Assembly (NCBI GenBank): GCA_002269645.1
Contig: NIVC01004000.1
Location: 1-64,000, forward strand
Source: Macrostomum lignano
Taxonomy: Eukaryota
Direction of reading: 5' to 3'
DNA length: 64,000 nucleotides
Part shown: positions 1-49,300 of the stretch, piece after piece
How positions within the stretch are numbered: the first letter of the stretch is position 1
Layout: every line of letters begins with the position of its first letter
The notes under the pieces: model-generated
What the model was told of the DNA's origin: nothing
Database searches by the model: none
Seen by the model: only the letters and a program-made list of their open reading frames with translations
Made by a program: the position numbers and the translations under genes

Positions 1-3000
1 CGCTGAGAATGTCATTCTCGTTGAACATCTTCCCCTGATAGCGGTGCTCATAGTAGTTCGCTATTCTCTGACGAAGAGCTCTAGGAAGCTTCCGGTAGGC
101 CATGTATTCCTCCACTTGTTTGAACTGTGAATTGCGATAGGATGGCGCCGGTTATTGCTTTGATTAGTTGCTAAATGTAATTAGATGACGCTGGAGTAGT
201 CTATCACCAAATAGGGTTCTGTATACTGTATAGTTATTAAAGGAGAAGCCTGATAACTAACTAAGAAAGGCCTGAAGAACAATTATAGAGGTAGCTAAAG
301 AGTCTTCACCATCCTAATCAGATTTTATTTCCGTTTCTGTTTCATTAAAATTCCTGATTTAAATTCGGAGCACTTTGATGATAAAATATCAGCAATATTT
401 TTCAATGCCTTGCAATATCAATCTGTGACGATGAAGACATTCTCCGGCAGGACACACTTCCCCGGGAAGTGATTAACAGAGCAAGCTAAGATATTGCTAC
501 AACATTGTTAAGACGTTATCCCCCGAGCTCACTTTCTCCCGATACATTCGCTTGGACGTGTCGAAGCTCTGTATCAGTGCCGCGGCGTGGCCGACGAAGA
601 GAGCGTAGCACGACGAGCCGGTCATCATGCTGACGATGGTGATCCAGGCCTCGCTAATGCTGGTTGGCGGGTGCTGACCGTAGCCAATGCTTAACATGTG
701 GCTCATGGCCTTGAACAGAGCCCAGGTGTACTGTCGGAACCAGTGAGCGTCCTACAAGTAAAGATGGTGACAACGCCGTATCAGTTCGGTACTCGTAATG
801 TGAGTATAATGCATTTTCGATGGCGGTAAATCTCAATTAACTCTATATTTAAAATCCTAAAACTAGAGACAATATATAATAACATCTATGCAGCGCAGCA
901 AACAAAGATTAAAACATTCGACAGAAGTTAGGAATAAAGATTATGCATAAGTAGTAATAATTTATCGCTTACAACAAAAATTGGCAGGCAAATGGCAGGA
1001 GTGGAAGACATCTAAAAATTCATGACACCCATATTCTATTCTCTGTATCTACGTGGATGGATGCAGTGTGTAAATGTACTTTAAACTGTACCACCTAAGG
1101 GAGCCTGGTTTGTTGATCAAATGAGTCCGATGCATTCCAATAGCATACCGAACCAATATGGCCCTTCTGTAATTTGCTGTGGAATGCTATCGCCTAAATA
1201 TCTATATATAAATCAATAATTGTAAAAACTTGTTGGTCTACTGAAGAGAACAGCTGAACAAAATTATAGAAATATGTTTTTAATGCAGTGATGGGTACCT
1301 GAATGTTCAGCTTCCTAACCCAGGAGTCTTTGGGAAAGTCCTGTATCGACGGTACAAGAAACTGCAAGCAGCCGTTCCAGTGCGCTAGCAGCAGCATCAG
1401 ACAGACCAGATTGACAACACGAATGAACACGGAGGCTACATTCAACAGCTGAAACGGGGGTTACATTAACGCGAGTGCTTACTGTGGCTTGTGCTTATTT
1501 ATGTCATAGTGCCAGCATATTAATGATGCAGGTGCCTTATTGCACAAAACATAAAGTTAATAACTTTTTCCGACAGTGAAAAGATTGAGTAATTGCATTA
1601 CTTTATGTTTAGTAAATCCAGTCAGTTTAAAAATGCAAACAACGTAACAAAGATTTGTTTAACTAATTCGTTATTAGTCTTAGGCCCAACTTAGGTTTCT
1701 GTGTGCAAAACATTATTTATCTGGGAGCTACAAATCCTAATCTTGTTTCTTTTTTGAAGAAGTTTTAATGCTTTCATTTGGGGTAATTTACCAATCTTAT
1801 ATCATACGGGTCAGTGAAAACTTTTGCTAATTTTTTTAGTATCAACTACTCGAACTGTACTCGGTTTTCGACATAAGATGACATGACATGCTTGGAATCA
1901 AATTAAAAGGATATTCAAATAGATTTAGCACACTTTTTGACTCAGAGTCTTGGCAAAATCATAATTGGATTCTGAACACATGAGCAGTGATGGCAGGTAC
2001 ACTGACTCGTACAGATACAAATGACCACTCTTAAGTCACCTTCAAATTGCAAACGGCCACCCAAGACTGATCAGGGAAGTCTTGCAGTAGCGGGATTAAG
2101 AACTGCAAGCAGGCATTCCAGTGGGCCAGCAGCAGCATCAGCAGTACTAGGTTAAATATGCCTATGAACTTATTTGCTATGTTCAGCAGCTGCAACATAA
2201 GATGGTGAAAGAGTGGAAAAATGTTATGCATAGTTCTAGCCTTTTTACAGTGAATCAGTCATCACAGCTTTGAACAGGATTTTAAATAAAGTTCACTTTG
2301 AAATCGGTCGATAATTTTTCAAAAAACCTTTTTGAAATAATAAGCATTGTGTACATTTGAGAATTTATAGATTTTTTTTATATTTTCTTGTGGTGTGAGT
2401 ACTTTTAGCTGAGGATTTATCGATAATGTTATTTGTTTTCCTGAACTTATCGCCTAGTTAAATTTAGTTAAATCATTGAGTTTTTGCCGACATCCGGTTA
2501 ACGCAGTCAAATTAATTGGTGCTAGTCAGTCATTGCGTCAATTAAATTTAGAGCTGTCGTTTTTTATTCAGTGTTGTTGTTGATTATACCGTTTCGATTT
2601 CAAATTCTACAGAGTCAAATTCGTCAGTATGTAGCTATATGTTGCCATGGAGCAGCTAACAGCGAATGAACATCAACTTACAATTGAATAACCGCCACCT
2701 ACCTAAGTACCTAAGTTACGAAATGATTGATTTTGTTGCATTATGATGCAAAGCAAAGCATGACACGAGAGTGGCAGAAAGATATAGGGTGAGAGGGAGA
2801 CAGGAATACAGGCTGGCTGTAGAGACACAGAAGCTCACTTATTTCTTCGAATTTGAAGTGAAATTGGTAAGCTTTTTTACCCAAGACACATGCGTTTCCT
2901 ACCCGAGCAGAATGCAGTAAAGGTCTGAGCGTCTGAGCTAAGGACGTCTTAATCTTAGCTGACGAATTTCAGTTAGTCAAATTAGAAGTCGGTTGTCTCT

Positions 3001-6000
3001 ACTCTACCAACGACACTAGCTTAATTCTTGCTTGTCGGGAAAAAGGCAACCAAGTTGATAATTTGGCCATAGACATCAGCAAAATAAGGATGCCAGTAGC
3101 AACGTCTTATAGAAATTATGCTGCCTTTCCCGTCTATGTCTCAGTCTCTGGGCAAGGCCAAATCTACTGCTGCCAAATGGGAAGTCTTAACTTGGTTGGC
3201 CTAACTATTAACTTGGCTGACAAAAGAAATACTTTGGCTTCTCTCTGCTGCTTACCTTTGCATTTCATAATCAAGACTTATTTTTTTATATAATCTTCGT
3301 AGCTAGTAGCATTTTAATTCCAACCTCAGAAAAACACTATCGAAGTCTCATTATCGAAGTCAGGCTAACACAAACAGCCAATTAGGCTTGGAGTTATTGC
3401 AAAACTAGGCAGGTTCTAGTATCGGCATCTAGTATGCGCTAAGCGAGCGTGCGAACATCATCCGGTATTCGTGAATTGCCCGGGTCTACCGATTGCAGTG
3501 AACTGCGGCTTCACCTTTAATCCTTCCTTGGTTACCCAAGAGTCGTCTGGGAAGTCGTTGAGAAACGGCACAAGGAATTGGAGGCAAGCGTTCCAGTGGC
3601 CAAGGAGCAGCATTATTAGAATCAGCTTTACTATTCCAAGGCACTTTGTTGCAACTTGCAATAGCTGAAATTTATATTGATTTCTTACGTTACATTTTAG
3701 TGCACTAAATACTGGCGACTCGGAAAATGTAGTAAAATGTTTTATGCAAGTGACATGTGTTAGAAATGTACCAAACCAAAAAACTGCAGTAAACAAGGTG
3801 TTGTTACAGTAATTACAATTGATGAATTATGGGCGTTTAAAAATATCCTGGTATCTGTATGATATTGAGACGCAAAAGAGTTTGCAGCTTTGATAATAAA
3901 ATCCACTCACCTCTTCCCATTGGCTGACATAGCGAACCAATCGCGAGAGCCGTAGCAGTCTTAGCAGGCTGAGCAACTTGGCTAGACGTAGGATCCTCAG
4001 TGCTCGACCTGGATGAGCAAGGATTTGATGGGCTTTGGAGCTGTGCGCTTAAGTTGGTTTAGGTTTATTTCACTTCTACATCAGAGTGAAAAAATGGGGC
4101 ACCATTGGTGCTACTTGTCCTTGACCACTCTCATGGTGAGATATCGGCATATGGCAGCTGTTAAACTCACCCGCATGTACCAGTTGGCTAACATTGCCTC
4201 GCTGATTCAGAGCCAAAAATATATAATCCATTGGAATAGAGGACACTAGATCGAGAAAGAACCACGACTTGACGTAGTGTTGAGCTATCAGCTTTGGATC
4301 CAGTATGATTTCGTCCGCGAAGTCGTTTGTTATTACGCCTGCAATATTTGATAAAATTTAGATGCTTAAATAGGAAGTATAGAGAGCATCATGTCTTTCA
4401 CAGGTGAAGGAAAAGTCTGGAAACAAACCGGTTCGAAAGTTGACGGCAATATCGCTTAAAAAGATGGTGTCGGACAAGCAGTTAAATATGATCCAATGCG
4501 CGCTGAGGTCGTCGTTGAAGAACGATATCGCCACCGGTAGCACAACCAAGTTGGTTATCAGGAGGATCAGCATCAGGAGGTCCCAGTAGAAACTGAGAGT
4601 CACAAAGGAGGAAGCGGTGATGCATTTCCATTGAAGTCTGTCTAAAACTCTTCTTTGCTTAATTTTCAGAATGCGAGAGCTAACTGCAAATGAAATTGTA
4701 CTATTAAATAAAGAACAATGTCTCATGCGCCTTGTCTGTCAGGCTCATTAAAATAATTTTCAAGCGGCTCTGCGGGAGCCGCGTATGTTCGCCTTTGATG
4801 CATGTTTTGCGTAGCTTTCCGCAATGGAAAGAAGTGAAACAAAGAATTCCACCCGGTCCACCCGGCAGCTGGAGGAATGTAGCGAGAGTGAAGTGCCTGA
4901 ATGAGTGGAGGAACTTTCCATAGCTAGATGGTAGGCAAGTTGACAAATAGCACAACAATAGCATCTACATCGGTAGCGATGGAAGTACCCCGTTAAGCAG
5001 CTATGATAAAGAGCCTTGGTGCTGTGTTTTGAAATGGAAATTACCCAACTGTCTAGTAGCCCGCCAACTCTAGACAGGAGAGAAGCGTGATGACGAATGA
5101 TGGACAGTCAGGTTAATTAGGCCCATGGGTTGAGAGAGTGGAAGAGCATTGAAGAGTCGTGACTACAGTGTTCATGCTTTAGTTACTGGAAGCCGAGCCA
5201 AGCATAGTTGCTATACGTGTATAATTAGAGTAAAACTACAAATTGCTTGGACAATTGACTAACAGCCAATGTTAAATAAATACTGACTTCACGCCTTACC
5301 GAAAGTTGCTGCACGGATGAATGATCCATTTGCCAGACTGCTGCTGTCTCTGCTTCTCTTTTAACAGAGCGTTTTTATTGCCAAACAGCTTCATTGCCAG
5401 CTTGTTGTCCGACGGCTGGAAGAAGGCGAAGAACTGCTCTTTCAGGTAGCTGGACGTGCTCTGCTTCTGATCTTCGGGCAATTCACAGCCCGTCTCCAGC
5501 ACTGCAGCATCGTCTAGTTGGCTGTTAGAGTCGCATTTCTCAATGCAATCGGGCTGCATGCATTGCTGCTGTTGCTGCTGTTGCAATCCGTTCGATGGCT
5601 GCTGCAGAGACTGCAGCGAAGGATTCTGCTGGAGAGTCTGCTGCCTTCGAAGGGAGCCAAGGCGGGAGCCGATGCGGGACCTCAGGCTGGGCCAGCGGCG
5701 CACTTTGGAAGAATTCCTGCTTGGACTGTCCTGCTGCTTCTGGCCCTGGGAAGAGTAGCCGGAAAATTCCGTGCACGACTCCATCGATTTTGACGACTTC
5801 CGGTTTGGAGGAGACGCGGAGGTGCACACAGAAGAGGAGGCTGCGGCTGCCGAGTTGGCAGGTGCTGCCACGGATGATGAGGTGTCGAGCGATTTAAAGG
5901 CCCGCATAGCTTTCAAATCCGGACGGCGCGTTCTCGGCTGTGGCTCAGGCGGGGTCTGGGAGTGCTGACCGGAGGTTGCAGCTGACTGCTTGCTCAACAG

Positions 6001-6144
6001 GCGCAGCCCGAAATCATCAACAGGCAGAGACTCGCTGCGGTCTATCAGAGCAGTGGCGCTGTCGGAGTCTGCATGGTTTTGATGGGGTGGGTTTGGACTG
6101 GAGTCTGATTGGCTATAAAAGTCTTGCTTGCAGACCAATCTCAA
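1..6144 (-). CDS. HCN: HCN (Ih) hyperpolarization-activated cyclic-nucleotide-gated channel; multi-exon, 3' part (CNBD) beyond left edge; exact start codon uncertain
   Basis: Exons on minus with GT-AG and matching phases: ~6144(?)-5300 (...[11 protein letters not shown]), 4592-4429 (FYWDLLML...NFRTG), 4338-4171 (...[18 protein letters not shown]), 4008-3911 (S4 [32 protein letters not shown]), one of 3664-3515 / 2189-2040 / 1448-1299 (S5), 751-533 (pore [11 protein letters not shown]6), 124-1 (C-linker [14 protein letters not shown]). The ORF-track start at 6144 is TTG, so the true 5' end is unresolved. Confidence 0.96.
1299..1448 (-). CDS. HCN: HCN alternative S4-S5/S5 exon C (most canonical copy)
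   Basis: tttcag|CTG...CAG|gtaccc, 150 nt, phase 0/0: [50 protein letters not shown]. Confidence 0.93.
2040..2189 (-). CDS. HCN: HCN alternative S4-S5/S5 exon B
   Basis: ttgcag|CTG...AAG|gtgact, 150 nt, phase 0/0: [50 protein letters not shown]. Confidence 0.9.
3515..3664 (-). CDS. HCN: HCN alternative S4-S5/S5 exon A
   Basis: tttcag|CTA...AAG|gtgaag, 150 nt, phase 0/0: [50 protein letters not shown]. Confidence 0.88.
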
Positions 6145-8710: not shown

Positions 8711-9985
8711 CAATATTGGAACGCACAAACAATTCAGTATAAAGTTCGTGCTCAACTTGGAAGTTAAGGATCAGCCCTAGGACGCAGTTTGTAAAACATC
8801 CACTCCCTTTGATCCATCTTTGCACATTGTGTAATTATTTTAGCGTAGCCTAGAGTTAATAGTTGTAATGTTTATTAACTTATTAGCCGATATCGTTATA
8901 CACAGCGTAATGATCCAATCTGGAACATGGCCATATAGGTAAAAAAAACATCACAATTTGTAGAGTGTCAGGTGTACAGATCTTATGTACTGTAGCCAAT
9001 ATTGAACTTCAAACTTTCTCTAATTGATCTGAATGCCTAACTAAGTTTTTCAAGAATGAGCTTTACTTTTATAAAGCAATAAACGCACAGTAAAGGCGAA
9101 GAATAGATCAAAGGGTGACGTGGGTCTCTACCGAAGCGTACAGAGTGCATCATTTAATCTTTGGAGCAGCTTATAAACTAGTATAGCCTGGCTCCGAAAT
9201 GCACTGCAATAACGCTGGAGCAGTCTATAAATGGCATGGACAATATTTTATAATAGCATATAATACATTTTTGTGTATAATAAATACAAAGCTATCGTAC
9301 AGGATCAATGAGGTTTCTCAGTTCCAGTCTCTTTGTTGCCGGACTTACTATAGATTTATTCTCCTATCTGTTTCCTATCTGTATCTGTTTGTTACAGTTA
9401 TCATTTTGCTACCAAGGTATTATTGATTCTCGAGCTTGTTAATAGATTCAGAGTGTCAGAGGTCGTCACATGCTCTCTCCTAAAATAATAGATTTTCTGT
9501 TGTGACCTCACAACAACTCTGAAGTCGTGTGACGCGCCGTAGCTTTTTTGGAACTTGTCAGTAGGCAGCCAACAGTTTTTACAGCCGAGTGAGCTGAGGG
9601 TAAGTCGGACAGTTTTTTTGTATTTGTCTGACTCCAGACACCCTAGCTTCATCAAAGGCTTCATTGTAACACCTTCTCTACATCCGGTGTCTCCTCTGTT
9701 GTGACTGAAACAGTCGCACAATTCGCATTTGCTTCCTTGAAGCCTTTTTCTTTCCTGTGGCTAACATCATAATTCTATAATCCTTGTTTGTCCCTTTTCT
9801 ACGAGTAAATAAAGAGAAAAAGTTTTTCCAAAGGACAGTTGTCACTTTGATTTAAGATTTGGATTTTAATCTCATCCTTACTTTCAAACTTTCACCCTTT
9901 TAGGCTCTTTACCTCGGTTGTCACGAGCAATAGCTTGAACGTCTTTATCCCTTTCATATATGGTTCTCTTAAACATCTCTAGTAA

Positions 9986-10347
9986 GGGAGTCCGTAGCCC
10001 AGTGGTCAAGCGCGTCGCTCTGATCTGCCAGCGGCCGAGGCTCGAGTCCAAGTGCAGTCACATTAATTGTGGCTGAATTGGAATCTTGGCTTGGCTCTGC
10101 TCGTGCAATTAACGGCCTTGAGGGCCAACCCCCAAGGCACAGTGAAGTGTACATGCCTAACGATAAATAAAGTTAGGGCCGCTGTGCACTCCTGTGTGAG
10201 TGTGCGCCTGTTTGTATGACTGAGTACGTATCCGCGCAAATGTGTGCCTGCTCAGGGGAGTCGGCGGAATGAGCAGCAATGCCTCTCGCCTGTTGTGTGA
10301 CAATGTCACTTAAAGTGCGCCACAGCCCCCTGGCCTCTAATAAAAAA
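9986..10347 (+). mobile_element. tRNA-derived SINE, family 1
   Basis: A-box-like TAGCCCAGTGG, B-box-like GGCTCGAGTCC, A-rich tail; collinear with the copy at 58008-58368. Confidence 0.85.
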
Positions 10348-13190: not shown

Positions 13191-13999
13191 GGTGTAATCA
13201 AATGTTATTATTACGGGTGTGCGACCGCTGAGTGCAGAACAAAACATTTTTTTTCAGAAATGCTGAAGTCGCCTGGACGGGAATATAAAATGCTGAATGC
13301 CAAAAATAGCCTCAGCTAAAGCCAGCATCGGTGACTATCTTACATCTTGCACTTAAATGCATTCGAATTCGAACTAAATCAGTTATTCGAGTTCCTAATC
13401 TTCTTCCATCTATGGAATGATAATTTCCCTGTCGGCACTCTGAAAATTTCCCAGGATGACTGGCTTATAGAAAGAGACAAGCGTGACTTTTCATCATTCT
13501 TTTTTTACCCAACCGAGCAAGTTGCCTTCGATAGGAAGACCCGCTCGAGTAGGCGAGCCCCGAGGGCAGTGCTGCTCGGGTTGCCTGTGAAGCTCTCAAG
13601 CCAACCCCTTGAGACCGCTACAATACTGAAGTCTCTTTGACTGACACCCCCTGAAGATGCTGGAGGTTCTGCAGGCTCGCATGGCTCGGCAAAAGGGAAG
13701 CAAAGTAAATGCTGTAGCATCAACTTTTCCATATTATCTATGCGCTCTGAAGTCCCTCTTGTTGAACCGGCTTCTACGAGTATCTACAATTTCACGCAAA
13801 GCTACATGTAGTTGAGAGTGAGTAGACTTTTGACTGCAGGGAAAAATTTCCCCGACTTAATAGCGAAAAAGGCGGTTGGGATTAGTGCGATATGATTTAA
13901 ACCTGTCGCAAGTACCAACTCAAGGACATTTGTACCTACCAACTAGAATGAGAAAGTGCGAGCCTATGAATCAATGTAAACAATTGATTACACCAGCCC

Positions 14000-15482: not shown

Positions 15483-18400
15483 TTATTGCCTTCCACCGCC
15501 CGTGCGAATGTAGGAGATCGTCGTTGGAACGTGGACCTCCTCGAATGTGCACAAGAATGCGTCTGCGCTCTGCAATGCAGTACATGTAGGTTCGAGCGTG
15601 TAACAATGGGCATAATGCTTTAACAGTCTAGACTACTGGAGTTCGCCCAGTCAAGTAGTCATGCTGGAGTATATTAAGCCTTTCAAACCTTTTCGTCCGG
15701 CAGGCAGGCACCGAGAGCCTGCAACAGGAGTGGCTCATCAACAACGCTGCTCTTGAACTGGGCATAGTCAATGGTACCCTTCTTCTGCGTGTCCTGCGGG
15801 TTGAATGCATGAATTGTGTTTGAAGCTGATGTTGGAACACGTCTATGGCCAAAATACCAGCTATTGAATATAGACCGACACTGTGGAAAGCTTCTTTATA
15901 TATTTAAGAATTTGAGCATTCATTTAAGGCATTTAAGGCCACTACCAATCATATTACTTTCATCTACCTACATGCACCGTCTATGGTCAAAACACCGCGT
16001 CTATGGTCAAAACACCGTCTATGGTCAAAACACCGTCTATGGTCAAAACACCGTCTATGGTCAAAACACCGTCTATGGTCAAAACACCGTCTATGGTCAA
16101 AACACCATCTATGGCCAACTTAAAACTTGTCTATGGTCAAAACACTGTCTATGGTCAAAACACTGTCTATGATCAAAACACCGTCTATGGTCAAAACACC
16201 ATCTATGGCCAACTTAAAATCTTGTCTATGGTCAAAACACCGTCTATGGTCAAAACACCGTCTATGGTCAATGGGACAGGCAAAGGCAGAGCATTAAATT
16301 CAATGCTCTCCCCATACGCGGCTTAGACCATAGACAATTCCAAGTTTAAGATAAGCAATCCATGTTATTCCAGGTTCATCCATGGTTGGCAGGGTCTTGA
16401 ATTAAATGCAAAATTTCCTAAATAATTTTTTTTAAATCTTGCAATTAGGGGGCGCAATGGGCGGTTTCATGACCCACTGAGAATGTCTATGGTAAAAAGA
16501 CCGCGCAATTCAATGACGTCACAAAATTCAAAGACAGGTCTTCTCTAAAGAAAGGAGTGCTTGTATGGACTTACATAATTTTGATTAGTCAAATTTCCTT
16601 TGAATTATTTACTATATCATTAAAGTTTACTAAACAGATAAAGGATATATCTGTTTAATAAATACGTAGATTCCGCCCATCTACGAAGTCGCAATTAATT
16701 ACGCTAACGTCAAATGAAAATTGTCGCTTTAGAATGCGACTTCTGACTTAAGTTTTAATAAAAATTATTGTTATTATTTGTTTGCTCCGTTACTAAAATT
16801 ACTCACAAACTTTTTGAAGACAATCTCCACCAGGTCCCTGACACCCTCGTCGGGATCCTCTTCCACGGGTTGCTGAAATTTAAAGTTTGTTACTGTTTTA
16901 ATACACTGTTTAAACAGGTATTTCTGCTTTAAGTTTCCAGTCTAAAACCATACATGGAATTCTGAATCTGCTTCAAATTTATTCGAAACATTAGCAACAA
17001 TTTGAAAAGATGTTCTTAAATTTTTTTTGTGACAGGCAGTGAATTTTTGCTATTTTTGTGCAAGTTCAATGAATTTAACTTTGCAGTTTAAACAGCCGAT
17101 GTTCAGGTCCATAACGCGTTCATATTAGGAGCATATTGCGCAAGGAAAGTACTTTATCAAGCAAACATGCCGATTAAAATGGCTAATATAGCCGATGATA
17201 ATTAGCATTTTTCACGAGTCTAGGAATTGAATGCCAAAAAGTAACCCATAGCAAATACAATAAATCATTAGTAGGCCATAGGCGCAGTACAACTGGATTG
17301 AATTGAATGAAACTTCTAAGAAAACGAGATTCCAAGTGCAAGTTTAATTTATTATCAAAATTGTGCAAATTGTTCACATCTTGCAATTGCTGCATTCAGA
17401 CATGCGTATGACGTGTGTGTTGAACCATAAAAAATTACAGCAAGTTTGGAACTTTATCTAGCAAATACGAGACAGCACTTACGTAGTCCAGGCTTCCCTA
17501 AGGTGGGTTTGGTAGGATTTGTTAATATAATTGTATAAATTTATAAATTGCAAATCGTAATTTAGGCTTTCGACAGGAATAGATTTGGTAATAACACAGG
17601 GTGAAAAAATCAGAGCCAATTTTATAAATAGCTATATCTGATCGTCTTCTTGCTGAAGTTGATTATTGCGCTAAGTTTAAAGATGTTATCTCGGGTATAG
17701 ATAGAAGCATTTAAATATGTTCAACATAACAGTTCGTAGAAACATTATTTACCATTCAGACGACAATTGAAACCCAAAATCGTTTAAATATAGCTACTCA
17801 CCCTAATCAGAGTTGACTTCAGCAGCTGAAACATCTCGTCCCTGCTGATGACTCCATCCGAGTTGAGATCGTACGCTCGGAATGCAACTGAAACCGCGAG
17901 AAATTGTCAATTTGTTATGATTGGGGGGCAAAATAGGTGCAAATCCTGGGAACTTGTAATCATAACCTCATACTGCATGGCTAAAAGCGGAATTCTTACA
18001 ACTGGTTTTCTCTTCCAATGTGCCTCTGAGAAACGTTGAAATGCCTTTGAGCCACTCTTCCTGACTGATGTTGGAGTCGGAGTCTGTGTCGAAGGCTCGA
18101 AATACTGAAGCGTCATTTTCGCGTGTAAATGTCTGATATATTATGATTTTTGAAAAAATATATCAATTCTAAAAAAAGTTTATTACCTTGGTCCATCATC
18201 AAATCGTCTGTCATGCCGAACGAATTGTGCAAGATGTCCTTGAACTTATTTCTGTCTAGTTTAGCATCATCTGCACCGCCAGTAATGTCTTTGTACATGT
18301 TCAAGAGATGCTCGCATTCCTTTTTTGTAACTGAAATTGTAGGAACTTAATTTTTTTACAAAACTGAATCGTCAGATGGTATCATGATTGAAAATAAAGT

Positions 18401-20179: not shown

Positions 20180-21532
20180 GCTTTCCTTGGTTGATATTCA
20201 ACTATAAACTCTATACTATACTTAACTTCAAATCTATATTAGCCTATATACTAAAAATAAGTTGTTTTATTATATACACTAAGCCTGAACTTAGCTTTTT
20301 TGTATACCAACTGTGTATACTAATGTTGACACTGAAAGTTCTATAAAAATTGTATGCTATGAATGTTAATAAACAGAAAAAGACTACAATTTTCTATAAG
20401 GAAAAGAAGTATAGAAGTGTAAAGGCTATTTGCCCAACTATGTTTGCTATTAAATATCATGGAATAATATAGACCTATAGTAGCTAGAGCTAGTTCTTTT
20501 GCAAAAAACTTAGAAAAGAGAAATTTCATATAAGAAATATTGGTAAAACTTTGACTATAAAAAACTAAACAAAAAATAAAAGAAAAGCTTATATGTAGCT
20601 ATATTATCATCTGGTTAGGCAATCTTTTGTTTTGAGCATTTAATTATTTTTCTATAGAATTTCATAGTTTCTATTTATTTTAATAGTTAATATAATCATT
20701 AAATCAACTATATAATTGATTTAATGAAGATATTGATACATTTCAATAGATAAATTGTTAATTTTCAACTAATAAAACTAATAAATAAGTGAATAAGCAT
20801 AAAATAAACAATGGTTATCCTGGTATATGTAGGTTAGCATTAGCAACTAGATAGATAATTGAGTTGCATGATTACTTCAGTTATGAGTCTATTGCATCTG
20901 CCCTACATTGACTAACTATTGACTGAGTCTACCTACCTAGCTAATAGTCAAAGACTATATTAGAAACAAATATTCCAAGCCATATCATTTTGTGCCCATT
21001 TAGATGATACATTTCTATTACCTAAATATATCAAAATGCTAAGATTAACATTCATCAATATATTTGATGATATAAAATTTCTTTTATACTATAATTGTCT
21101 ATAAAGCCAAGGGATTAGTAAAGCAACTTCTATTTTTGTACATTTCTTATAACTCAATCAAGGTTGCTATAAAGTAGCATATAAGCTAAGGTTCAACAAA
21201 CTGCAGCCTCAAAGTCTCTATATGACCTTTTAGTACTTTAAAACTTCACTATTATTGCAATCCAGCCTACACAAGTTGAAGGCTTCTATCTCTTATTAGC
21301 TCTCTCTTCTCCTTTCTTTCCTTATACCTCTCTTTTCATCTCTCATCTATCTCCCCCTCTTTTGTGTCTATTCCCCTCTTCTCATCTCTGATCTGGCTCA
21401 AAGTCATGAGCTAGATTATTTGTTTGAATCTTGAGGTAAAATGTTTGCTGACCCCTGATGTAACCAGGCCTAGCAGACACTTAATTTCCATGTCTTAATT
21501 TACAACTTATTTCAGCTCGGCGACGATCTGTT

Positions 21533-25721: not shown

Positions 25722-28700
25722 ATGACCGAGTGCCACCAGCCTGAGGCGAAAACGGACTATGCCAACGGCTGCCTGCTAGAGCTGGATGAGCTTCGCGAGC
25801 TGGTGAGCCAGTGCGCCAGAAACAATTCAGTAGACGATTTGCAACAATTGCTCAGCCTCAACCGAGCAATGCCCGGCTTCAGCTTGAACCTACCCAGCTA
25901 CTCCAAGAGCTTCTTTGGTTGGACTCCGCTGCACCTGGCTGCTTTCTTTGGCCACTCTGAGGCCTGCCGATTCCTGCTGGAACATGGCGCCGATGTCGAC
26001 GCCCCAGCCGACAATGGCGACACTCCTTTGCACAAGGCCAGCTATACTGGCCGGTCGTCCGTGGTTCGAATCCTCCTAGACGCCGGCTGCGATGTCCGCC
26101 TGACAAACTACGCCAATCAGACCCCGTCAGATTTGGCTAAAACGCCTGAGGTTGCCGACATGATTGCTGCCGCTGAGATTCACGCTGGCAAACAGCTGGA
26201 GCAGAGATTGCTAGCGGCTGCTCAGGCTGGTGACTGCGGCACCGCGGACCAACTGCTGGGTAATTGAAAGCCTTAGACATTGAGAATCTTCACTAAACAG
26301 ACTTGGGAATTAAGAGAAACCGACTTTACGAATCGTAGGAGCCGCCTCTTAGCAGTTATTCTGATTCCCTGAGTTACCCCTGCGCAGCACCTGACTAACC
26401 CCTGAGTAACCCAAGAGCAGCACCTGACTAACCCCTGAGTAACCCAAGAGCAGCACTTGACTAACCCCTGAGTAACCCAAGAGCAGCACTTGACTAACCC
26501 CTGAGCCGCACCTGACCAACCCCTGAGTAACCCTGAGCAGCACCTGACTAACCCCTGAGCAGCACCTGACCAACCCCTGACTAACCCCTGACTAACCCCT
26601 GAGCAGCACCTGACCAACCCCTGACTAACCCCTGAGCAGCACCTGACCAACCCCTGACTAACCCCTGAGCAGCACCTGACCAACCCCTGACTAACCCCTG
26701 AGCAGCTCCTGACTAACTCCTGACCAACCCCTGACTAACCCCTGAGCAGCACCTGACTAACCCCTGAGCAGCACCTGACTAACCCCTGAGCAGCACCTGA
26801 CTAACCCCTGAGCAGCACCTGACCAACCCCTGAGCAGCACCTGACCAACCCCTGAGCAGCACCTGACCAACCCCTGACCAACCCCTGACTAACCCCTGAG
26901 CAGCACCTGACTAACCCCTGACCAACCCTTGACTAACCCCTGAGCAGCACCTGACTAACCCCTGACCAACCCTTGACTAACCCCTGAGCAGCTCCTGACT
27001 AACCCCTGAGCAGGACATGACCAACCCCTGACTAACCCCTGAGCAGCATCTGACCAACCCCTGAGTAACCCCTAAGCAGCATGTAACCAAGCAGCCTCTG
27101 AGCAGCACTTGATCAACTCTTTAGTAGCCTCTGAGCAGTGTCTGAGCAGTGTCTGAGCATATCCATGCCCCCCCTCTCGCGCAGGCCTGACCTGCCCGCC
27201 AGACCTGCACTGCACAGACCGGTACGGCAACACGCCGCTACACCTGGCTGCCAGATCCAACCGCAGCCAATTAGCAGTACAGTTATTAGAGCGAGGCGCC
27301 GATCCGTCTAAACGAAACCTGGCCGGTTGCTGTCCAGCTGATCTGGCTGTCAGCTCAGCGATGCGCCAGCTGCTCGCCTCGGTGCCCAGCCTACCGTCCC
27401 TGCTGCACCGGGACCCGCCCGCGCCTCGGTCCGGTCTGATGCAGAAGAAAGCCGCCTTCTTGTTGCTAGGCTGGCGGACTATACACGTAGAATTGGACAA
27501 CGCCGAGCTCAGGTATTATCGGGCGTCAAAATCTGGCGGACAGTACAGAGCAACCCAGAGTCTGGCGTTTCAACGGGCATTGAATGGCAGCGTGGTGACC
27601 AGCACGGATGTGCAAGCCGATTGTCTTGTTGTCTGCTTCAGCAATGGCGCCAGGTATTTATTGCATATGCTTATTATAGTGTATATTGGCACTACCCTTA
27701 TCTCTATCTGCCCCTTGTCTCTATCGGCCCCTTATCTCTATCTACCCTTATCTCTATCTACCCTTATCTCTATCTGCCGCTTATATCTATCTACCCTAAT
27801 CTCTATCTGCTCCTTATATCCCTGTCTGCCCCTTATCTCTATATGCTCTTATCTCTATCTAATCTTATCTTTATCTACCCTTATCTCTATCTGCCTCTTA
27901 TCTCTATCTGCCCATTATATCTATCTACCCTTAGCAGAGGAGAGCGGGGAAAAAGACGGGGAAACTGAGTCGCCTCCGAGCTCTTTCCACTGAGTTTAGA
28001 ATTTGAATCGGCATTCAATTTAAAGAATTTCACCGTCTCATTTCGGAGAATCTGGATGTCTCAATTTAATAGAGTATCTCATTATGTCAATCTGGAGACT
28101 CTCAAGACTCAAGTGGAAAGGTAAATATCAATTCTGCAGATCTTTGTCCAGAGAGTCTCAAACCAGAGCAGAAAATCTCAAACCAAACCAGAGAATCTCA
28201 ATCCAGACCAGAGAATCTCAATCCACACCCTCTAGACACACCCTCCGCTGCATGCCGGAGGATGACTCGCCAGTTGCCAGGCAACTGTGGCTCACCGCTA
28301 TTCGGCGTCACATCGAATTCGGCGACCGCCGGTTGGCCACCGACATCGAGGCGGCCGGATCTGCTAGCGACAGCAGCGGCGTAGGCGGCGGTCTGGAAAA
28401 CGGCGGCGGCGGCGGCTTTGTGCCGATCCGGTCAATGGCCGAGTCCGTCCGGGCCGCCGAGGCGCACCAGCAGATTCTGGTTGATCAGGTTGGCACTTAC
28501 AGCTGAGCACTCTGACACAGGCAGTCAATTACAGATGAGCACTCTGACACAGACAGTCAATTACAGCTGAAGCATTCTGACACCGACAGTCAATTACAGC
28601 TCAAGCATTCTGACACAGACAGTCAATTACAGCTCAAGCAGTCTGACACAGACAGTCAATTACAACTGAAACACTCTGACACAGACAGTCAATTACAGCT

Positions 28701-31700
28701 CAAGCATTCTGACACAGACAGTCAATTACAGCTGAAGCATTCTGACACAGACAGTCAATTACAGCTGAAGCATTCTGACACAGACAGTCAATTACAGCTC
28801 AAGCATTCTGACACAGACAGTCAATTACAGCTGAAGCATTCTGACACAGACAGTCAATTACAGCTCAAGCAGTCTGACACAGACAGTCAATTACAGCTGA
28901 AGCACTCTGACACAGACAGTCAATTACAGCTCAAGCATTCTGACACAGACAGTCAATTACAGCTGAAGCATTCTGACACAGACAGTCAATTACAGCTCAA
29001 GCATTCTGACACAGACAGTCAATTACAGCTGAAGCATTCTGACACAGACAGTCAATTACAGCTCAAGCAGTCTGACACAGACAGTCAATTACAGCTGAAG
29101 CACTCTGACACAGACAGTCAATTACAGCTCAAGCATTCTGACACAGACAGTCAATTACAGCTGAAGCATTCTGACACAGACAGTCAATTACAGCTGAAGC
29201 ATTCTGACACAGACAGTCAATTACAGCTCAAGCACTCTGACACAGGCAATTACAGCTCAAGTATTCTGACACAGATAGTCAATTACAGCTCAAGCATTCT
29301 GACACAGACAGTCAATTACAGCTGAAGCATTCTGACACAGACAGTCAATTACAGCTGAAGCATTCTGACACAGACAGTCAATTACAGCTGAAGCACTCTG
29401 ACACAGACAGTCAATTACAGCTGAAGCATTCTGACACAGACAGTCAATTACAGCTGAAGCATTCTGACACAGACAGTCAATTACAGCTGAAGCATTCTGA
29501 CACAGACAGTCAATTACAGCTCAAGCACTCTGACACAGGCAATTACAGCTCAAGTATTCTGACACAGATAGTCAATTACAGCTCAAGCAGTCTGACACAG
29601 ACAGTCAATTACAGCTGAGCACTCTGACACAGGCAGTCACTTACAGCTGAGCAGTCTGACACAGACAGTCAATTACAGCTCAAGCAGTCTGACACAGACA
29701 GTCAATTACAGCTCAAGCAGTCTGACACAGACAGTCAATTACAGCTCAAGCAGTCTGACACAGACAGTCAATTACAGCTGAAGAAGTCTGACACAGACAG
29801 TCAATTACAGCTCAAGCAGTCTGACACAGACAGTCAATTACAGCTGAGCACTCTGACACAGACAGTCAATTACAGCTGATGCAGTCTGACACAGACAGTC
29901 AATTACAGCTCAAGCAGTCTGACACAGGCAGTCAATTACAGCTCAAGCAGTCTGACACAGACAGTCAATTACAGCTGAAGCATTCTGACACAGACAGTCA
30001 ATTACAGCTCAAGCATTCTGACACAGACAGTCAATTACAGCTCAAGCAGTCTGACACAGACAGTCAATTACAGCTGAAGCACTCTGACACAGACAGTCAA
30101 TTACAGCTCAAGCATTCTGACACAGACAGTCAATTACAGCTGAAGCATTCTGACACAGACAGTCAATTACAGCTCAAGCAGTCTGACACAGACAGTCAAT
30201 TACAGCTGAAGCACTCTGACACAGACAGTCAATTACAGCTGAAGCATTCTGACACAGACAGTCAATTACAGCTGAAGCATTCTGACACAGACAGTCAATT
30301 ACAGCTGAAGCATTCTGACACAGACAGTCAATTACAGCTGAGCACTCTGACACAGGCAGTCAATTACAGCTGATGCAGTCTGACACAGACAGTCAATTAC
30401 AGCTCAAGCAGTCTGACACAGACAGTCAATTACAGCTCAAGCAGTCTGACACAGACAGTCAATTACAGCTGAAGCATTCTGACACAGACAGTCAATTACA
30501 GCTCAAGCATTCTGACACAGACAGTCAATTACAGCTCAAGCAGTCTGACACAGACAGTCAATTACAGCTGAAGCACTCTGACACAGACAGTCAATTACAG
30601 CTCAAGCATTCTGACACAGACAGTCAATTACAGCTGAAGCATTCTGACACAGACAGTCAATTATAGCTCAAGCAGTCTGACACAGACAGTCAATTACAGC
30701 TGAAGCACTCTGACACAGACAGTCAATTACAGCTGAAGCATTCTGACACAGACAGTCAATTACAGCTGAAGCATTCTGACACAGACAGTCAATTACAGCT
30801 GAAGCATTCTGACACAGACAGTCAATTACAGCTCAAACACTCTGACACAGGCAATTACAGCTCAAGTATTCTGACACAGATAGTCAATTACAGCTCAAGC
30901 AGTCTGACACAGACAGTCAATTACAGCTGAGCACTCTGACACAGGCAGTCAATTACAGCTGAGCAGTCTGACACAGACAGTCAATTACAGCTCAAGCAGT
31001 CTGACACAGACAGTCAATTACAGCTGAGCACTCTGACACAGGCAGTCAATTACAGCTCAAGCAGTCTGACACAGACAGTCAATTACAGCTCAAGCAGTCT
31101 GACACAGACAGTCAATTACAGCTCAAGCAGTCTGACACAGACAGTCAATTACAGCTGAAGAAGTCTGACACAGACAGTCAATTACAGCTCAAGCATTCTG
31201 ACACAGACAGTCAATTACAGCTGAGCACTCTGACACAGGCAGTCAATTACAGCTCAAGCAGTCTGACACAGACAGTCAATTACAGCTCAAGCAGTCTGAC
31301 ACAGGCAGTCAATTACAGCTCAAGCAGTCTGACACAGACAGTCAATTACAGCTCAAGCAGTCTGACACAGACAGTCAATTACAGCTGAAGCATTCTGACA
31401 CAGACAGTCAATTACAGCTGAAGCAGTCTGACACAGACAGTCAATTACAGCTGAAGCATTCTGACACAGACAGTCAATTACAGCTGAGCACTCTGACACA
31501 GGCAGTCAATTACAGCTGAAGCATTCTGACACAGGCAGTCAATTACAGCTGAAGCATTCTGACACAGGCAGTCAATTACAGCTCAAGCAGTCTGACACAG
31601 ACAGTCAATTACAGCTCAAGCATTCTGACACCATAGCAAACATTTCCTGTACTTCATTAACTCAGTTTAAGTTAAATTTTTTTACGTTTAAGTTAGAATC

Positions 31701-32249: not shown

Positions 32250-33410
32250 GACCCTATTCTATCCTGATCCCATTCTATCCTGATCCCATTCTATCCTGAT
32301 CCTATTCTATCCTGATCCCATTCTATCCTGATCCTATTCTATCCTGATCCCATTCTATCCTGATCCTATTCTATCCTGATCCCATTCTATCCTGATCTCA
32401 TTGTATCCTGATCCTATTCTATCCTGATCCCACTCTATCCTGATCCCATTCTATCCTGATCCCATTCTATCCTGATCCCATTCTATCCTGATCCCATTCT
32501 ATCCTGATCCCATTCTATCCTGATCCCATTCTATCCTGATCCCATTCTATCCTGATCCCATTCTATCCTGATCCCATTCTATTCTAACCCCATTTCTATC
32601 CGGATCCCATTCTATCCTGATCCCATTCTATTCTGATCCCATTCTATCCTGATCCCATTCTATCCGGATCCCATTCTATCCTGATCCTATTCTATCCTGA
32701 TCCCATTATATCCTGATCCCATTATATCCTGATCCCATTCTATCCTGATCCCATTCTATTCTAACCCCATTTCTATCCGGATCCCATTCTATCCTGATCC
32801 CATTCTATCCTGATCCCATTCTATCCTGATCCCATTCTATCCTGATCCCATTTTATCCTGATCCCATTCTATCCTGATCCCATTCTATCCTGATCCCATT
32901 CTATCCTGATCCCATTCTATTCTAACCCCATTTCTATCCTGATCCCATTCTATTCTAACCCCATTTCTATCCGGATCCCATTCTATTCTGATCCCATTCT
33001 ATCCTGATCCCATTCTATCCTGATCCCATTCTACCCTGATCCCATTCTATCCTGATCCCATTCTATTCTAACCCCATTTCTATCCGGATCCCATTCTATT
33101 CTGATCCCATTCTATCCTGATCCCATTCTATCCTGATCCCATTCTATCCTGATTCCATTCTATTCTAACCCCATTTCTATCCTGATCCCATTCTATCCTG
33201 ATCCCATTCTATCCTGATCCCATTCTATCCCGATCCCATTGTATCCTGATCCCATTCTATCCTGATCCCATTCTATCCTGATCCCATTCTATCCTGATCT
33301 CATTGTATCCTGATCCTAAACTATCCTGATCCTTATTCTATCCTGATCATATTCTATCCTGCTCCCATTCTATCCGGATCCCATTCTATCCTGATCCCAT
33401 TCTATCCATA
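32250..33410. repeat. 16-bp minisatellite (ATCCTGATCCCATTCT), about 70 copies
   Basis: Tandem array beginning about 30 nt after the OSBPL1A-like stop codon. Confidence 0.96.
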
Positions 33411-34129
33411 TCCCAGTAAATGTCAAGCTGACTCAAGCACAACGATAGCCGGTGTTCACAAGGATGCGCTTGTACGGCTCTCCAAGTTCTTATTCCAGTT
33501 TAACTTGTCCTAAATTTGTCAACCCAGAAGTCAGTAATTATATTTATATATTTATTAGGCCCCAGCCTATAAATTAAATATTTGGTATTCGATGAGTTCT
33601 TGGGAACTACTTTATTATTGCTCACAATAGACCAAACTGTTCAAATATGTGTACAATTAGTTTATGTTCATAATAAATAATCAGATATATTTAATAGTTT
33701 GTCATCCACAGCACGGTATTGAATATCAAAGCTGAGCCTTGTGCTAAATGCCGAATAGATTGATGTACACAAAAAAGCGTTTTTTTCGGGCTATCTGTGT
33801 GTGTCTTTGTCAACCAATAATACCGATCTATCATCATATCATCAACTGTACAAATGTTTTATTGCATTGTCTTGCAGTTTGCTGCCAAAATTATTTAATT
33901 GTTATTGTCATTGAAACACGAAATTGTAATATAAATTTTATCAATTATGAGTCATCAGTCATGCGATCTAAAAATAGTCTTGACACGATTTTCAGGTGAT
34001 AATTGTTTGTGTTCCACTAATCCAATACCGGAATTTATGCTTTCAACTAGTCTGTAATCTGTTAAATAAGATGGTTAACTGATTTTACAGTTCTGATTTT
34101 ATTTACTGTTTTCTTTGTTGCACTTTTAT

Positions 34130-39929: not shown

Positions 39930-40150
39930 TGAGCGCTAAGAGTCTGTCAAAGCTTCAACTTCAAAAGCTGGTGGGCAAAATCGGCTGGTTTTTGCAAGGT
40001 GGCTCGCCCCGCTCGAGTCTTTCTGCGAGCTCGAATTGACGTCACCAACACCATCAATGGGTGTCATCGCCGGATTCCCGTGGCGGGCGAGCTCCGCGTT
40101 CAACTGGACTGGTGGCAGCATGGCCTTCCGCCTTTCCATGCAATCGTCTC
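39930..40150 (+). mobile_element. DIRS/Ngaro-like retrotransposon pol fragment (RT-RNase H connection)
   Basis: VFLRARIDV...HRRIPVAGELRVQLDWW resembles the FLRRLIDL...DL.WW motif of tyrosine-recombinase retroelements as recalled. Confidence 0.5.
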
Positions 40151-40907
40151 TGGTGCTAAAGCCCCTGGTGCTAAAGCCCCTGGTGCTAAAGCCCCTGGTG
40201 CTAAAGCCCCTGGTGCTAAAGCCCCTGGTGCTAAAGCCCCTGGTGCTAAAGCCCCTGGTGCTAAAGCCCCTGGTGCTAAAGCCCCTGGTGCTAAAGCCCC
40301 TGGTGCTAAAGCCCCTGGTGCTAAAGCCCCTGGTGCTGAAGCATTTGGTGCTAAAACCACTGGTGCTAAAGCACTTGGTGCTAAAGCCACTGGTGCTAAA
40401 ACCACTGGTGCTAAAACCACTGGTGCTAAAGCCACTGGTGCTAAAACCACTGGTGCTAAAACCACTGGTGCTAAAGCCACTGGTGCTAAAGCCACTGGTG
40501 CTAAAACCATTGGTGCTAAAGCCACTGGAGCTAAAGCCACTGGTGCTAAAGCCACTGGTGCTAAAGCCACTGGTGCTAAAGCCACTGGTGCTAAAGTCCC
40601 TGGTGCTAAAGCCACTGGTGCTAAAACCATTGGTGCTAAAGCCCCTGGTGCTAAAGCCCCTGGTGCTAAAGCCCCTGGTGCTAAAGCCCCTGGTGCTAAA
40701 GCCCCTGGTGCTAAAGCCCCTGGTGCTAAAGCCCTTGGTGCTAAAGCCCCTGGTGCTAAAGCCCCTGGTGCTAAAGCCCCTGGTGCTAAAGCCCCTGGTG
40801 CTAAAACCACTGGTGCTAAAACCACTGGTGCTAAAGCCACTGGTGCTAAAGCCCCTGGTGCTAAAGCCACTGGTGCTAAAACCACTGGTGCTAAATATCC
40901 TGGTGCT
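40151..40907. repeat. 15-bp minisatellite (TGGTGCTAAAGCCCC), about 50 copies
   Basis: Tandem array; reads GAKAP or VLKPL in two stop-free frames. Confidence 0.96.
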
Positions 40908-41335
40908 GACGCTTCAGCGCCCTCCATAATTAATCCTACCCGGCAGCTTACACTCCTGCAAGCTGAAACCGAGCAGTCCGTGCCAGCGGTAATTGCCATA
41001 GCAGTTTTTTTCTCTCTAATACCACAATAGACAATACAGTGCTGCACAAATAGCTCGTACTTCTCTATCCTCTTGAAAATCGCAATACATCTAATTGAAT
41101 GAGAAATTGCAATAAAACAGGCAATTAAAAATGAGTTAAAACACTGTCCTGTGTATTATTTATAAACCGATCCAGTAAAGTAAACGAAATTAAATTTCCT
41201 GACCAGTAGAACTCTAGAATATTAACAAAACTTCTCAGGCTTTTGTCTTGAGCTGCGCCTTAAACTGTCAATTATCTCGGTTTCGTCCTTAATAAATAAA
41301 ACTGCAGCTGATGGTTGCGGAGCGGTCTCCGCAAT

Positions 41336-47902: not shown

Positions 47903-48224
47903 TTAGGTTGCAGTTAAGTTATTTTTTAAACAGACACTCCTGTAGGGCTGTTGAAGAACAGATTAAACCGATATTTCTACGAAGATTACGAAAAAGTTTT
48001 GTTGGCAATAAATAAATTTCGTTGGTTTGACAATAAATTGCCATAGACAATTTTAAATTGGCATCTTAAGAAAGACGCCGCTCATCTAAAATGCGATCAG
48101 AAGCAAACAGGAGAAACTGAGAGTAGGTGGGCTTGTTAAAATTGTGTTTTGACACAGCCTATGTCAAATTATTTATTGTAAAAAGCCTACAGCGTCATCA
48201 AAACAGCATGACGTTAGAATCTAA

Positions 48225-49300
48225 GACTTAGAAGAGGAAGGAGAAGATAAGAGGATAGATGAGATGAGAGATTAAAGGAAAGAGGAGATAAGAGTATAGA
48301 TGAGATCAAATATGAAAGGAAAGCGGAGATAAGAGGATAGATAATTTGAGAGATGAAAGGAAAGAGGGGATGAGAGGATAAATGAGATGAGAGATGGAGA
48401 GATGAAAGAAGAAATGAGATGAAAGAAGAGATAAGAGGAAAGAAGAGATGAGAGATGAAAGAAGAGTTGAGGGATGAAAGAAGAGATGAGAGGAAAGAAG
48501 AGATGAGAGGAAAGATAAGATAAGAGGATAGATGAGATGAAGGATGAGAGATGAGAGGAAGAAGAGATAAGAGGATAGATGAGATGAGAGATGAGAGATG
48601 AAAGGAAAGAAGAGATGAGAGGATAAATGAGAGGAGAGATGAAAGAAGAGATGAGATGAAAGAAGAGATAAGAGGAAAGAAGAGATGAGATGAAAAAAGA
48701 GATGAGAGATGAAAGAAGAGTTGAGAGATGAAAGAAGAGATGAGAGTAAAGAAGAGATAAGAGGATAGATGGGATGAGTGATGAGAGATGAGAGGAAGAA
48801 GAGATAAGAGGATAGATGAGATGAGAGATGAGAGATGAAAGGAAAGAAGAGATAAGAGGATAAATGAGAGGAGAGATGAAAGAAGAGATGAGATGAAAGA
48901 AGAGATGAGATGATAGATGAGAGGAGAGATGAAAGAAGGGATGAGATGAAAGAAGAGATGAGATGATAGATGAGAGGAGAGATGAAAGAAGGGATGAGAT
49001 GAAAGAAGAGATGAGAGATGAAAGAAGAGATGAGAGGATAGATGAGATGAGGGATGAGAGATGAGAGGAAAGAAGAGATAAGAGGATAAATGAGATGAGA
49101 GATGAGAGGAAAGAAGAGATAAGAGGATAGATAAGATGAGAAATGAGAGATGAAAGAAAAGAAGAGATGAGATGATAGATGAGAGGAGAGATGAAGAAAG
49201 AAATGAGATGAAAGAAGAGATGAGAGGAAAGAAGAGATGAGAGATGAAAGGAAAGAAAAGAGAGGAGAGAGAGGAGATGAGAGGGGAGATTAGAGAGCGG
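48225..49300. repeat. Purine-rich (GA) low-complexity satellite
   Basis: GAGAT/GAAAG mosaics; source of the spurious 402-aa SSL ORF. Confidence 0.92.

Follow-up and report, generated by a model that had tools for sequence, protein, structure and literature searches.

Three probably mutually exclusive S5 exon cassettes in an HCN channel gene of the flatworm Macrostomum lignano

Introduction

Mutually exclusive exons that exchange a membrane segment are well established in voltage-gated channels, where, besides Drosophila cacophony, the exons c/d and k/l of para, exon 5N/5A of the vertebrate Nav channels and exon 8/8a of CaV1.2 belong to this class. In the docking and selector system of Dscam, the docking site of exons 4 and 9 is placed downstream of the exon cluster, and a similar layout is found in 14-3-3xi; srp is a further example of docking and selector pairing. 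Herein, we describe an HCN (Ih) channel gene located on the minus strand of the first 64,000 nucleotides (nt) of contig NIVC01004000.1 of Macrostomum lignano (assembly GCA_002269645.1; the whole stretch is termed the window), in which three tandem cassettes, named A, B and C, lie between the S4 exon and the pore exon and are probably spliced one at a time. Within the same gene family, Drosophila Ih has variants whose differences lie in the N-terminus and in the loops S3-S4 and S4-S5 (PMC4382183), with a reported minimum of 12 isoforms (PMC3344876). In the literature searched, to which the original arthropod Ih papers (Gisselmann 2005, Ouyang 2007) did not belong, no S5 exon swapping was described for any HCN gene, and nothing was found on HCN channels in flatworms.

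The gene and its three cassettes

The exons are given below in the direction of transcription.

5300..6144, minus strand: N-terminal coding exon (Q/S-rich N-terminus and Ion_trans_N), from the open reading frame, Pfam PF08412 (E 6.7e-24) and tblastn against M. lignano P0032/P0131; the 3' end at 5300 is fixed by the donor GTAAGG, and the 5' limit (~6144) is the end of the open frame only
4429..4592, minus strand: constitutive exon S1-S2 (FYWDLLML...NFRT), donor GTTTGT, 93% identity to the M. lignano exon
4171..4338, minus strand: constitutive exon S2-S3 (ends ...LVHA), donor GTGAGT, from comparison with the M. lignano exon
3911..4008, minus strand: constitutive S4 exon, identical to that of M. 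lignano in 100% of its amino acids, with a strong donor (GTGAGT) at 3910
3515..3664, minus strand: cassette A (tttcag/CTA...AAG/gtgaag), 74% identical to its M. lignano L001/L010 counterpart
2040..2189, minus strand: cassette B (ttgcag/CTG...AAG/gtgact), 84% identical to its M. lignano counterpart
1299..1448, minus strand: cassette C, canonical type (tttcag/CTG...CAG/gtaccc), 88% identical to its M. lignano counterpart
533..751, minus strand: constitutive exon with pore helix, SIGYG filter and S6, including the Asp of QSFD; donor GTGAGC
1..124, minus strand: start of the C-linker exon, which continues past the window edge; the cyclic-nucleotide-binding domain lies outside the window

Here L001 denotes the M. 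lignano contig NIVC01000689.1 and L010 its 97%-identical duplicate, NIVC01000344.1. Each of the three cassettes is 150 nt long, open and of phase 0/0, and is bounded by an AG acceptor and a GT donor between the S4 and the pore exons, exactly as the original prediction had it, the coordinates, strand and splice sites of which were all reproduced. The amino-acid identities amount to 32/50 for A/B, 28/50 for A/C and 32/50 for B/C (56-64%), which match the counts that had been made by hand (28-32 of 50). At the nucleotide level, 92-96 of the 150 positions are identical in pairwise comparison, and the third codon positions, with 18-19 identities in 50, are near random. When each cassette was searched by tblastn against the 64-kb window, the three copies were returned at E 1e-14 to 1e-18 and the next match at E >0.02, which indicates that the similarity lies far beyond chance and that there is no fourth cassette in the window. 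No duplicates of other HCN exons were found there either, and neither tRNA nor Rfam elements were detected in the region. The introns that separate the cassettes, of 1325 nt (A-B) and 591 nt (B-C), show no similarity to each other, in agreement with the earlier remark that the flanking introns are not evidently alike.

Judged by its sequence, the gene encodes an HCN (Ih) channel. The joined S4, cassette C and pore segments, compared with the PDB by phmmer, retrieved the human and rabbit structures of HCN1, HCN3 and HCN4 at E 1e-60 to 1e-62, whereas other channels were far weaker (CNG 1e-14, KAT1/hERG 1e-9), so that the first assignment to the HCN family is borne out by HCN1/HCN4 structure matches of E ~1e-62. 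The HCN-specific N-terminal motif Ion_trans_N (PF08412, E 6.7e-24) is present in the exon 6144-5300, and the C-linker begins at 124-1, where the window edge follows; the full C-linker and cyclic-nucleotide-binding domain is present in the product of the 93-98% identical M. lignano gene (P0251). The closest proteins are those of flatworms and not of arthropods, the constitutive exons being identical to M. lignano gene 1 at 185/199 and 112/114 positions and similarly close to gene 2. The filter region reads SIGYGQHPP in macrostomids (window 751-533; L001 21223-21441) and SIGYGR in parasitic flatworms, while most HCN channels have CIGYGR.

The extent of the exchanged segment was derived from an AlphaFold model of the window protein with cassette B, built with a 27-sequence alignment and reaching a mean predicted local distance difference test (pLDDT) score of 73; residue k of the query corresponds to HCN1 residue 250+k, up to E283, in the phmmer alignment. 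The cassette occupies residues 145-194 of the model (pLDDT 76-88), with a loop at 145-147 and a helix at 148-178, so that S4 is followed by a turn of three residues and then by an S5 helix of 31 residues, and the remaining 16 residues form the beginning of the turret. Each cassette is accordingly modelled to encode all of the S5 helix, together with the S4-S5 turn before it and the start of the extracellular turret behind it, and the earlier description of an S4-S5 linker/S5 cassette agrees with this placement of the whole S5 helix inside it.

Conservation of the cassettes and evidence for single inclusion

The A-B-C order between the S4 and pore exons is kept in both L001 and L010. The second M. 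lignano gene, represented by the UniProt models P0131, P0252 and P0253, also has all three cassettes in this order, and they are intact in at least three other M. lignano loci besides the window. Between the window and L001, synonymous sites are saturated, with proportions of synonymous differences (pS) of 0.43-0.83, while the corresponding nonsynonymous proportions (pN) are 0.06-0.15 in the cassettes (A 0.15, at a pS of 0.82; B 0.11; C 0.06) and 0.00-0.085 in the constitutive exons. Since a decaying exon would not keep its length, frame and splice sites through such divergence, A, B and C are regarded as real exons, and all three are under purifying selection. The comparison of selection with related sequences, which had been proposed along with the prediction, hence favours it, and A and B, far from being degraded in these relatives, are intact in L001, L010 and gene 2. 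Intron footprinting between the window and L001 revealed nothing alignable beyond the exon edges +/- 6 nt, and a short-context homologue search with cassette A returned no Macrostomum isoform; a third M. lignano gene (P0013) has no genomic locus on record.

A further shared trait concerns the splice donors. In the window and L001 together, the +5G is lacking in 6/6 cassette donors (window GTGAAG, GTGACT and GTACCC; L001 GTGACA, GTGAAT and GTAGAG) and present in 9/9 constitutive donors (Fisher's exact ~2e-4), which extends to a second locus the contrast first drawn between three weak cassette donors and the flanking GTGAGT and GTGAGC. Weak cassette donors are thus a conserved property.

Several familiar means of enforcing exclusivity were examined and rejected. 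Steric hindrance is ruled out by the inter-cassette introns of 1325 and 591 nt, and U2/U12 incompatibility by the lack of U12-type sites (no AT-AC or GTATCC; the donors are GTGAAG, GTGACT and GTACCC). Enforcement through the reading frame and nonsense-mediated decay is likewise ruled out, for double inclusion of 150-nt exons remains in frame, as had been pointed out beforehand. The claim that an active mechanism would be needed holds.

Gene models from M. lignano bear directly on cassette usage. In P0032 (PAA78447.1, on L001), the S4 exon is joined directly to C (QWEE/C), A and B being skipped, and after C the model runs into the following intron. The full-length model P0251 (938 aa, on L010), which shares one 90% cluster with P0032, reads QWEE/A/EAHWF and skips B and C. 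Both models lie on the Mlig_3_7 assembly, the GenBank annotation of which was made from RNA-seq with StringTie, TACO and TransDecoder and not ab initio, and TACO was run with an isoform fraction of 0.75 (PMC5730564), a setting that we would expect to remove minor isoforms. A-only and C-only isoforms therefore have model-level support, which is in line with the initial view of the cassettes as probably mutually exclusive. The UniProt models of gene 2 (P0131, P0252 and P0253) are of another kind and carry A, a truncated B with an internal start, and C in tandem, so that three S5 helices are predicted; this structure is almost certainly an ab initio artefact enabled by the in-frame cassettes, and it illustrates that the frame does not enforce exclusivity.

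Cassettes in other animals

Five neodermatan loci were compared, which come from Paragonimus, two Schistosoma mekongi paralogues, Spirometra and Hydatigera (L002, L003, L004, L008 and L009). Exactly one cassette lies between S4 and the pore in 5/5 of them, and in 4/5 it is closest to B (B 68-78%, A 56-67%, C 54-56%), while A and B tie at 64-65% in the fifth, the S. mekongi locus L003. Given this B-type cassette as the sole S5 exon, B appears to be functional on its own. Moreover, all HCN paralogues sampled from trematodes, cestodes and one monogenean (including P0132-P0146) have only the variant cassette, with Gly and Ala at the equivalents of R297 and G313. Several of these parasitic-flatworm HCN proteins have been mislabelled in their source records, where they are called 'anaphase-promoting complex subunit Hcn1'.

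The cassettes fall into two types by a small set of residues. Position 10 is Arg in C and in all other phyla sampled, and Gly in A, B and all Neodermata; position 26 is Gly in the former group and Ala in the latter; and Lys7 and Leu16 follow the same split. In a neighbour-joining tree of the 50 columns, {A, B, Neodermata} received a bootstrap of only 57%, and the grouping is for that reason based on the shared derived residues. In the simplest history, canonical and variant cassettes would have coexisted before the macrostomid/neodermatan split, after which the Neodermata lost the canonical cassette and the macrostomids duplicated the variant.

Beyond the flatworms, a single canonical cassette was found in the leech Helobdella and in the nemertean Tubulanus. 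The annelid tube-worm Lamellibrachia satsuma (L011, JAHXPS010006218.1) possesses two tandem 150-nt cassettes at 9977-10126 and 13543-13692, of which only the downstream one is canonical, the upstream one being a variant with HWNAC and Lys7 that retains Arg10. The donor of the upstream cassette, GTATCC, resembles the U12 type. Cassette B was also searched against 1.84 billion representative proteins, and the top 15 matches (P0254-P0268) are short open reading frames (ORFs) that read through two tandem cassettes. The sources of 10/15 were looked up and comprise 8 ENA metagenome contigs, the Lamellibrachia gene model P0263 and the JGI entry P0264. The ecdysozoan HWSGC type is carried by 13/15 of the tandem ORFs, the in-frame spacers of which measure 24-63 nt except for one of 132 nt, and the introns that this implies would probably be too short for splicing; Arg at position 10 is missing from several of the second copies among the arthropod-type contigs. 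Among the matches, the annotated isoforms of insects and ticks show no S5 swap, all sharing one cassette. In addition, P0274 and P0275 from Logan assemblies contain a cassette that shares 79-80% identity with B; it has Lys7, Leu16 and HWNAC but retains Arg10, and may be an intermediate between the canonical and the flatworm-variant types.

On this evidence, tandem S5 exons are a recurrent feature of protostome HCN genes and not peculiar to the window. The novelty that the original prediction had assumed is lowered to that extent, given an annelid locus and many arthropod-like contigs that also have two tandem S5 cassettes. More speculatively, and as a proposal that we hold only tentatively and think rather more likely wrong than right, the cassette pair might be an ancient spiralian or at least pan-flatworm module that switches between a tight-closing (Arg) and a loosely coupled HCN channel, which the macrostomids expanded to three cassettes under RNA pairing and from which the parasites dropped the canonical member, being left with HCN channels of the Arg-less type only.

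Predicted functional difference between the isoforms

The cassettes differ at a residue of known importance for gating. In HCN1-based numbering, cassette position 10 is equivalent to R297 (R339 in HCN2), and D401 has its equivalent in the Asp of the QSFD motif encoded by the pore exon. In HCN1, the R297-D401 salt bridge stabilises the closed state (PMC11189445), and with the HCN2 mutation R339E the open probability does not fall below ~43%, while the coupling between sensor and gate is weakened by 1.2 kcal/mol (PMC11050684). C keeps the Arg at position 10, whereas A and B have Gly there together with a Lys three residues, or one helical turn, earlier. By analogy, the isoforms should differ in closed-state stability and in sensor-to-gate coupling, and because C keeps the Arg while A and B combine Gly with the earlier Lys, we predict that C channels close more tightly than A and B channels, or that the voltages of activation differ. 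A and B resemble the HCN2 R339 and HCN1 R297 mutants in the natural absence of this Arg, which is located at the cytoplasmic end of S5, and they retain its Asp partner in the pore exon. The difference is that a natural Gly, a Lys three residues earlier and ~20 other changes are found here instead of a single charge reversal.

HCN gating relies on a loose, non-domain-swapped contact of S4, the S5 foot and the C-linker, and the gene carries three interchangeable versions of that interface. Since the cassettes differ at the very position where mutation renders the mammalian channels leaky (HCN2 R339/HCN1 R297), they would offer a ready-made structure-function system. The sampled HCN channels of parasitic flatworms, which have the variant cassette only, differ from the host channels at this gating-critical site.

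Candidate RNA pairing between the introns

The original prediction had suggested competing RNA pairings as the active mechanism and a search of the introns for docking and selector sequences. An earlier energy-based scan for hubs with RNAduplex was dominated by GC-rich noise and proved uninformative for the window, and a hub statistic was used instead, in which the best position of the docking intron covered by stems to both inter-cassette introns is scored, ungapped stems being compared with dinucleotide shuffles.

In L001, a candidate docking site of 19 nt (GACGCTTCGAAATTTGCCA) was located at 20785-20803 in the last intron, 420 nt upstream of the pore exon. It pairs with 17730-17748 of the A-B intron (-30.6 kcal/mol) and with 18328-18344 of the B-C intron (-26.7 kcal/mol), two stems that rank second and third within the 5-kb interval. 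The hub score of 39 compares with 27.6 +/- 1.7 in shuffles and was reached by 0/500 of them. The motif has only three occurrences in 29 kb, and the likeness among the sites is restricted to the 19-nt core; an origin of the selectors and docking site as transposon copies was considered and rejected, as the similarity ends at that core. The top-scoring stem of the locus is a perfect inverted repeat of 16-18 bp within the A-B intron (17130-17147/17254-17271, 108 nt apart), which is possibly a small foldback element.

In the window, the following elements were obtained.

836..859, minus strand: weak, AT-rich candidate for the docking site, located in the last intron at 84-108 nt before the pore exon
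2275..2291, minus strand: candidate for selector 1, located in the A-B intron at 85-102 nt before B
1547..1561, minus strand: candidate for selector 2, located in the B-C intron at 98-113 nt before C
1145..1162, minus strand: 5' arm of a strong stem in the last intron, 137-154 nt downstream of C
775..792, minus strand: 3' arm of the strong stem, located where the branch point of the pore exon is expected (24-41 nt before that exon)

The candidate docking site 859-836 pairs with 2291-2275 (17 bp, 1 mismatch, -17.4 kcal/mol) and with 1561-1547 (15 bp, 2 G-U pairs, -12.9 kcal/mol), and the two pairings make use of overlapping arms. The best hub of the window has the same intron layout as that of L001, with docking in the last intron and selectors in the A-B and B-C introns. 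No docking hub was found in the first intron, from S4 to A (compare Dscam exon 6), of either the window or L001. The pairing scan of the window yielded no selector for C, and a stem internal to the last intron was found instead, namely 1162-1145 with 792-775 (18 bp, -26.0 kcal/mol), which is the second-best stem in the S4-to-pore interval and may bring the donor of C close to the acceptor of the pore exon. Weak look-alikes of its 5' arm (CAGTTCGGTA-like) occur downstream of A (~3505-3480) and of B (~1866-1845).

From these elements a mechanism may be proposed. The weak donors would make the cassettes dependent on activation, and the docking site in the last intron would pair alternatively with the selector in the A-B intron or with that in the B-C intron. 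Either pairing would loop out the downstream cassettes and bring the chosen donor next to the acceptor of the pore exon, and C would be used when no long-range pairing is formed.

Weighing the interpretations

Taken together, we consider it quite probable that the macrostomid HCN gene has three mutually exclusive exons, of which one cassette enters each mRNA, with the RNA pairing and the isoform difference as the accompanying proposals. A number of observations nevertheless count against it. The isoform support comes from gene models of other M. lignano loci and none from the window locus itself, and Macrostomum yielded no model with B alone. P0251 is without an accession, and we infer its transcript origin from the annotation method, from its 5'-partial ORF and from the fact that it uses the most divergent of the cassettes. 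With three S5 helices in tandem, the parity of the topology would be unchanged, which on its own permits triple inclusion. As to the pairing, the hub of the window scores 29 against 24.8 +/- 1.8 in shuffles and was reached by 44/1000 of them, a marginal value for weak, AT-rich elements; these are unrelated in sequence to the elements of L001, the docking motif of which is absent from the window. No covariation or conservation of the pairings was seen between the window and L001, the introns of which share the layout only, and L001 and L010, being 97% identical with unchanged elements, are uninformative for covariation. Finally, looping alone does not account for the skipping of A when B is chosen. 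The suggestion of competing RNA pairings consequently met with a divided outcome, in that it gained clear support in L001 (0/500 shuffles) and stayed marginal in the window (44/1000), and a pairing mechanism for this gene is an inference that is strong for M. lignano L001 and weak for the window.

The alternative that survives best retains the single cassette and changes the means of selection. The choice would be set by trans-acting factors, such as cell-type-specific repressors or activators, that act on the weak donors, with the intron complementarity being incidental. This fits the marginal hub of the window and leaves room for the unexplained skipping of upstream cassettes, and weak donors would suit any model of a regulated exon; the annelid two-cassette locus, moreover, shows no significant stem between its two introns (15/100). 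It does not readily explain why in L001 two independent sites, one per inter-cassette intron, pair with the same 19-nt site (0/500), why the motif occurs nowhere else in 29 kb and resembles its partners in the pairing core alone, or why the best hub of the window shares the intron layout. We regard control by trans-acting factors as possible, at well below an even chance.

A second alternative holds that only the canonical C is really used and that A and B are duplicated relics or rarely spliced pseudo-exons. It appeals to the resemblance of C to the HCN channels of other phyla and to the direct joining of S4 to C in P0032, and it is very improbable in view of the frame, length, AG/GT sites and low pN that A and B keep across saturated divergence in at least 4 loci, of the full-length model P0251 that uses A alone, and of the B-type cassette that is the sole S5 exon in five parasitic-flatworm loci. 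Scarcely credible, too, is the inclusion of all three cassettes in one channel with three S5-like helices, which the preserved frame, the parity of an odd number of S5 helices and the strings of A, part of B and C in P0131, P0252 and P0253 would allow, for those models begin B internally as an ab initio predictor would, the models on the RNA-seq-annotated assembly hold one cassette each, every cassette keeps the full S5 contact motifs (HWNxCLQFLxP...FPxDSW) as expected for the same structural slot, and all complete orthologue models outside Macrostomum have one S5. One mutually exclusive cassette per mRNA remains the preferred interpretation.

Repeats upstream of the gene

Upstream of the HCN gene, the window is densely occupied at 8489-63520 by minisatellites, with over 20 arrays that are unrelated to one another, have repeat periods of 15-80 nt and reach 96 copies; examples are 28497-31631 (33-nt unit), 32256-33415 (16-nt unit) and 62416-63520 (40-nt unit). 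These arrays account for the blocks of extreme GC/AT skew and for the long repetitive ORFs 39999-41047 and 48214-49422.

Comparison with known systems

M. lignano can be made transgenic (PMC5730564), which renders the candidate docking and selector elements a testable case of exon choice by RNA pairing outside the arthropods. The interest of the gene lies in the toggled residue, in the depth of conservation and in a host animal that is capable of transgenesis.

As in the docking and selector system of Dscam, the present candidates would comprise a single site in a flanking constitutive intron, matched by complementary sequence in both inter-cassette introns, with pairings that overlap and therefore exclude each other; the docking site, moreover, lies downstream of the cassette cluster, as it does for exons 4 and 9. 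Selectors have been proposed to be copied along with the exons, and the L001 selectors, which share only the pairing core, would fit this idea. The differences from such systems are that a non-arthropod gene is concerned, that there are only two selectors, that the element sequences differ between the window and L001, and that the signal in the window is marginal.

The arthropod Ih channels (DmIh, AMIH and PIIH) belong to the same gene family and are alternatively spliced in the same region of the protein, but in the published descriptions consulted (PMC4382183, PMC3344876) the variation is one of loop length and not an S5 swap. The arthropod-type contigs with two cassettes, placed 24-63 nt apart, would represent a steric arrangement with a short intron, unlike the introns of 0.6-1.3 kb here.

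The nearest counterparts are therefore found among the mutually exclusive exons of other voltage-gated channels, exemplified by IS4a/IS4b of Drosophila cacophony, which likewise are tandem, homologous and of equal length and phase, and in which the single exon chosen for each transcript sets a membrane segment and so tunes gating. What distinguishes the present gene is that it belongs to the HCN family and to a flatworm, that the S4-S5 turn and the whole of S5 are exchanged, and that there are three choices rather than two. Mutually exclusive membrane-segment exons are already familiar in those channels, and the gene described here adds a probable further case from the HCN family.

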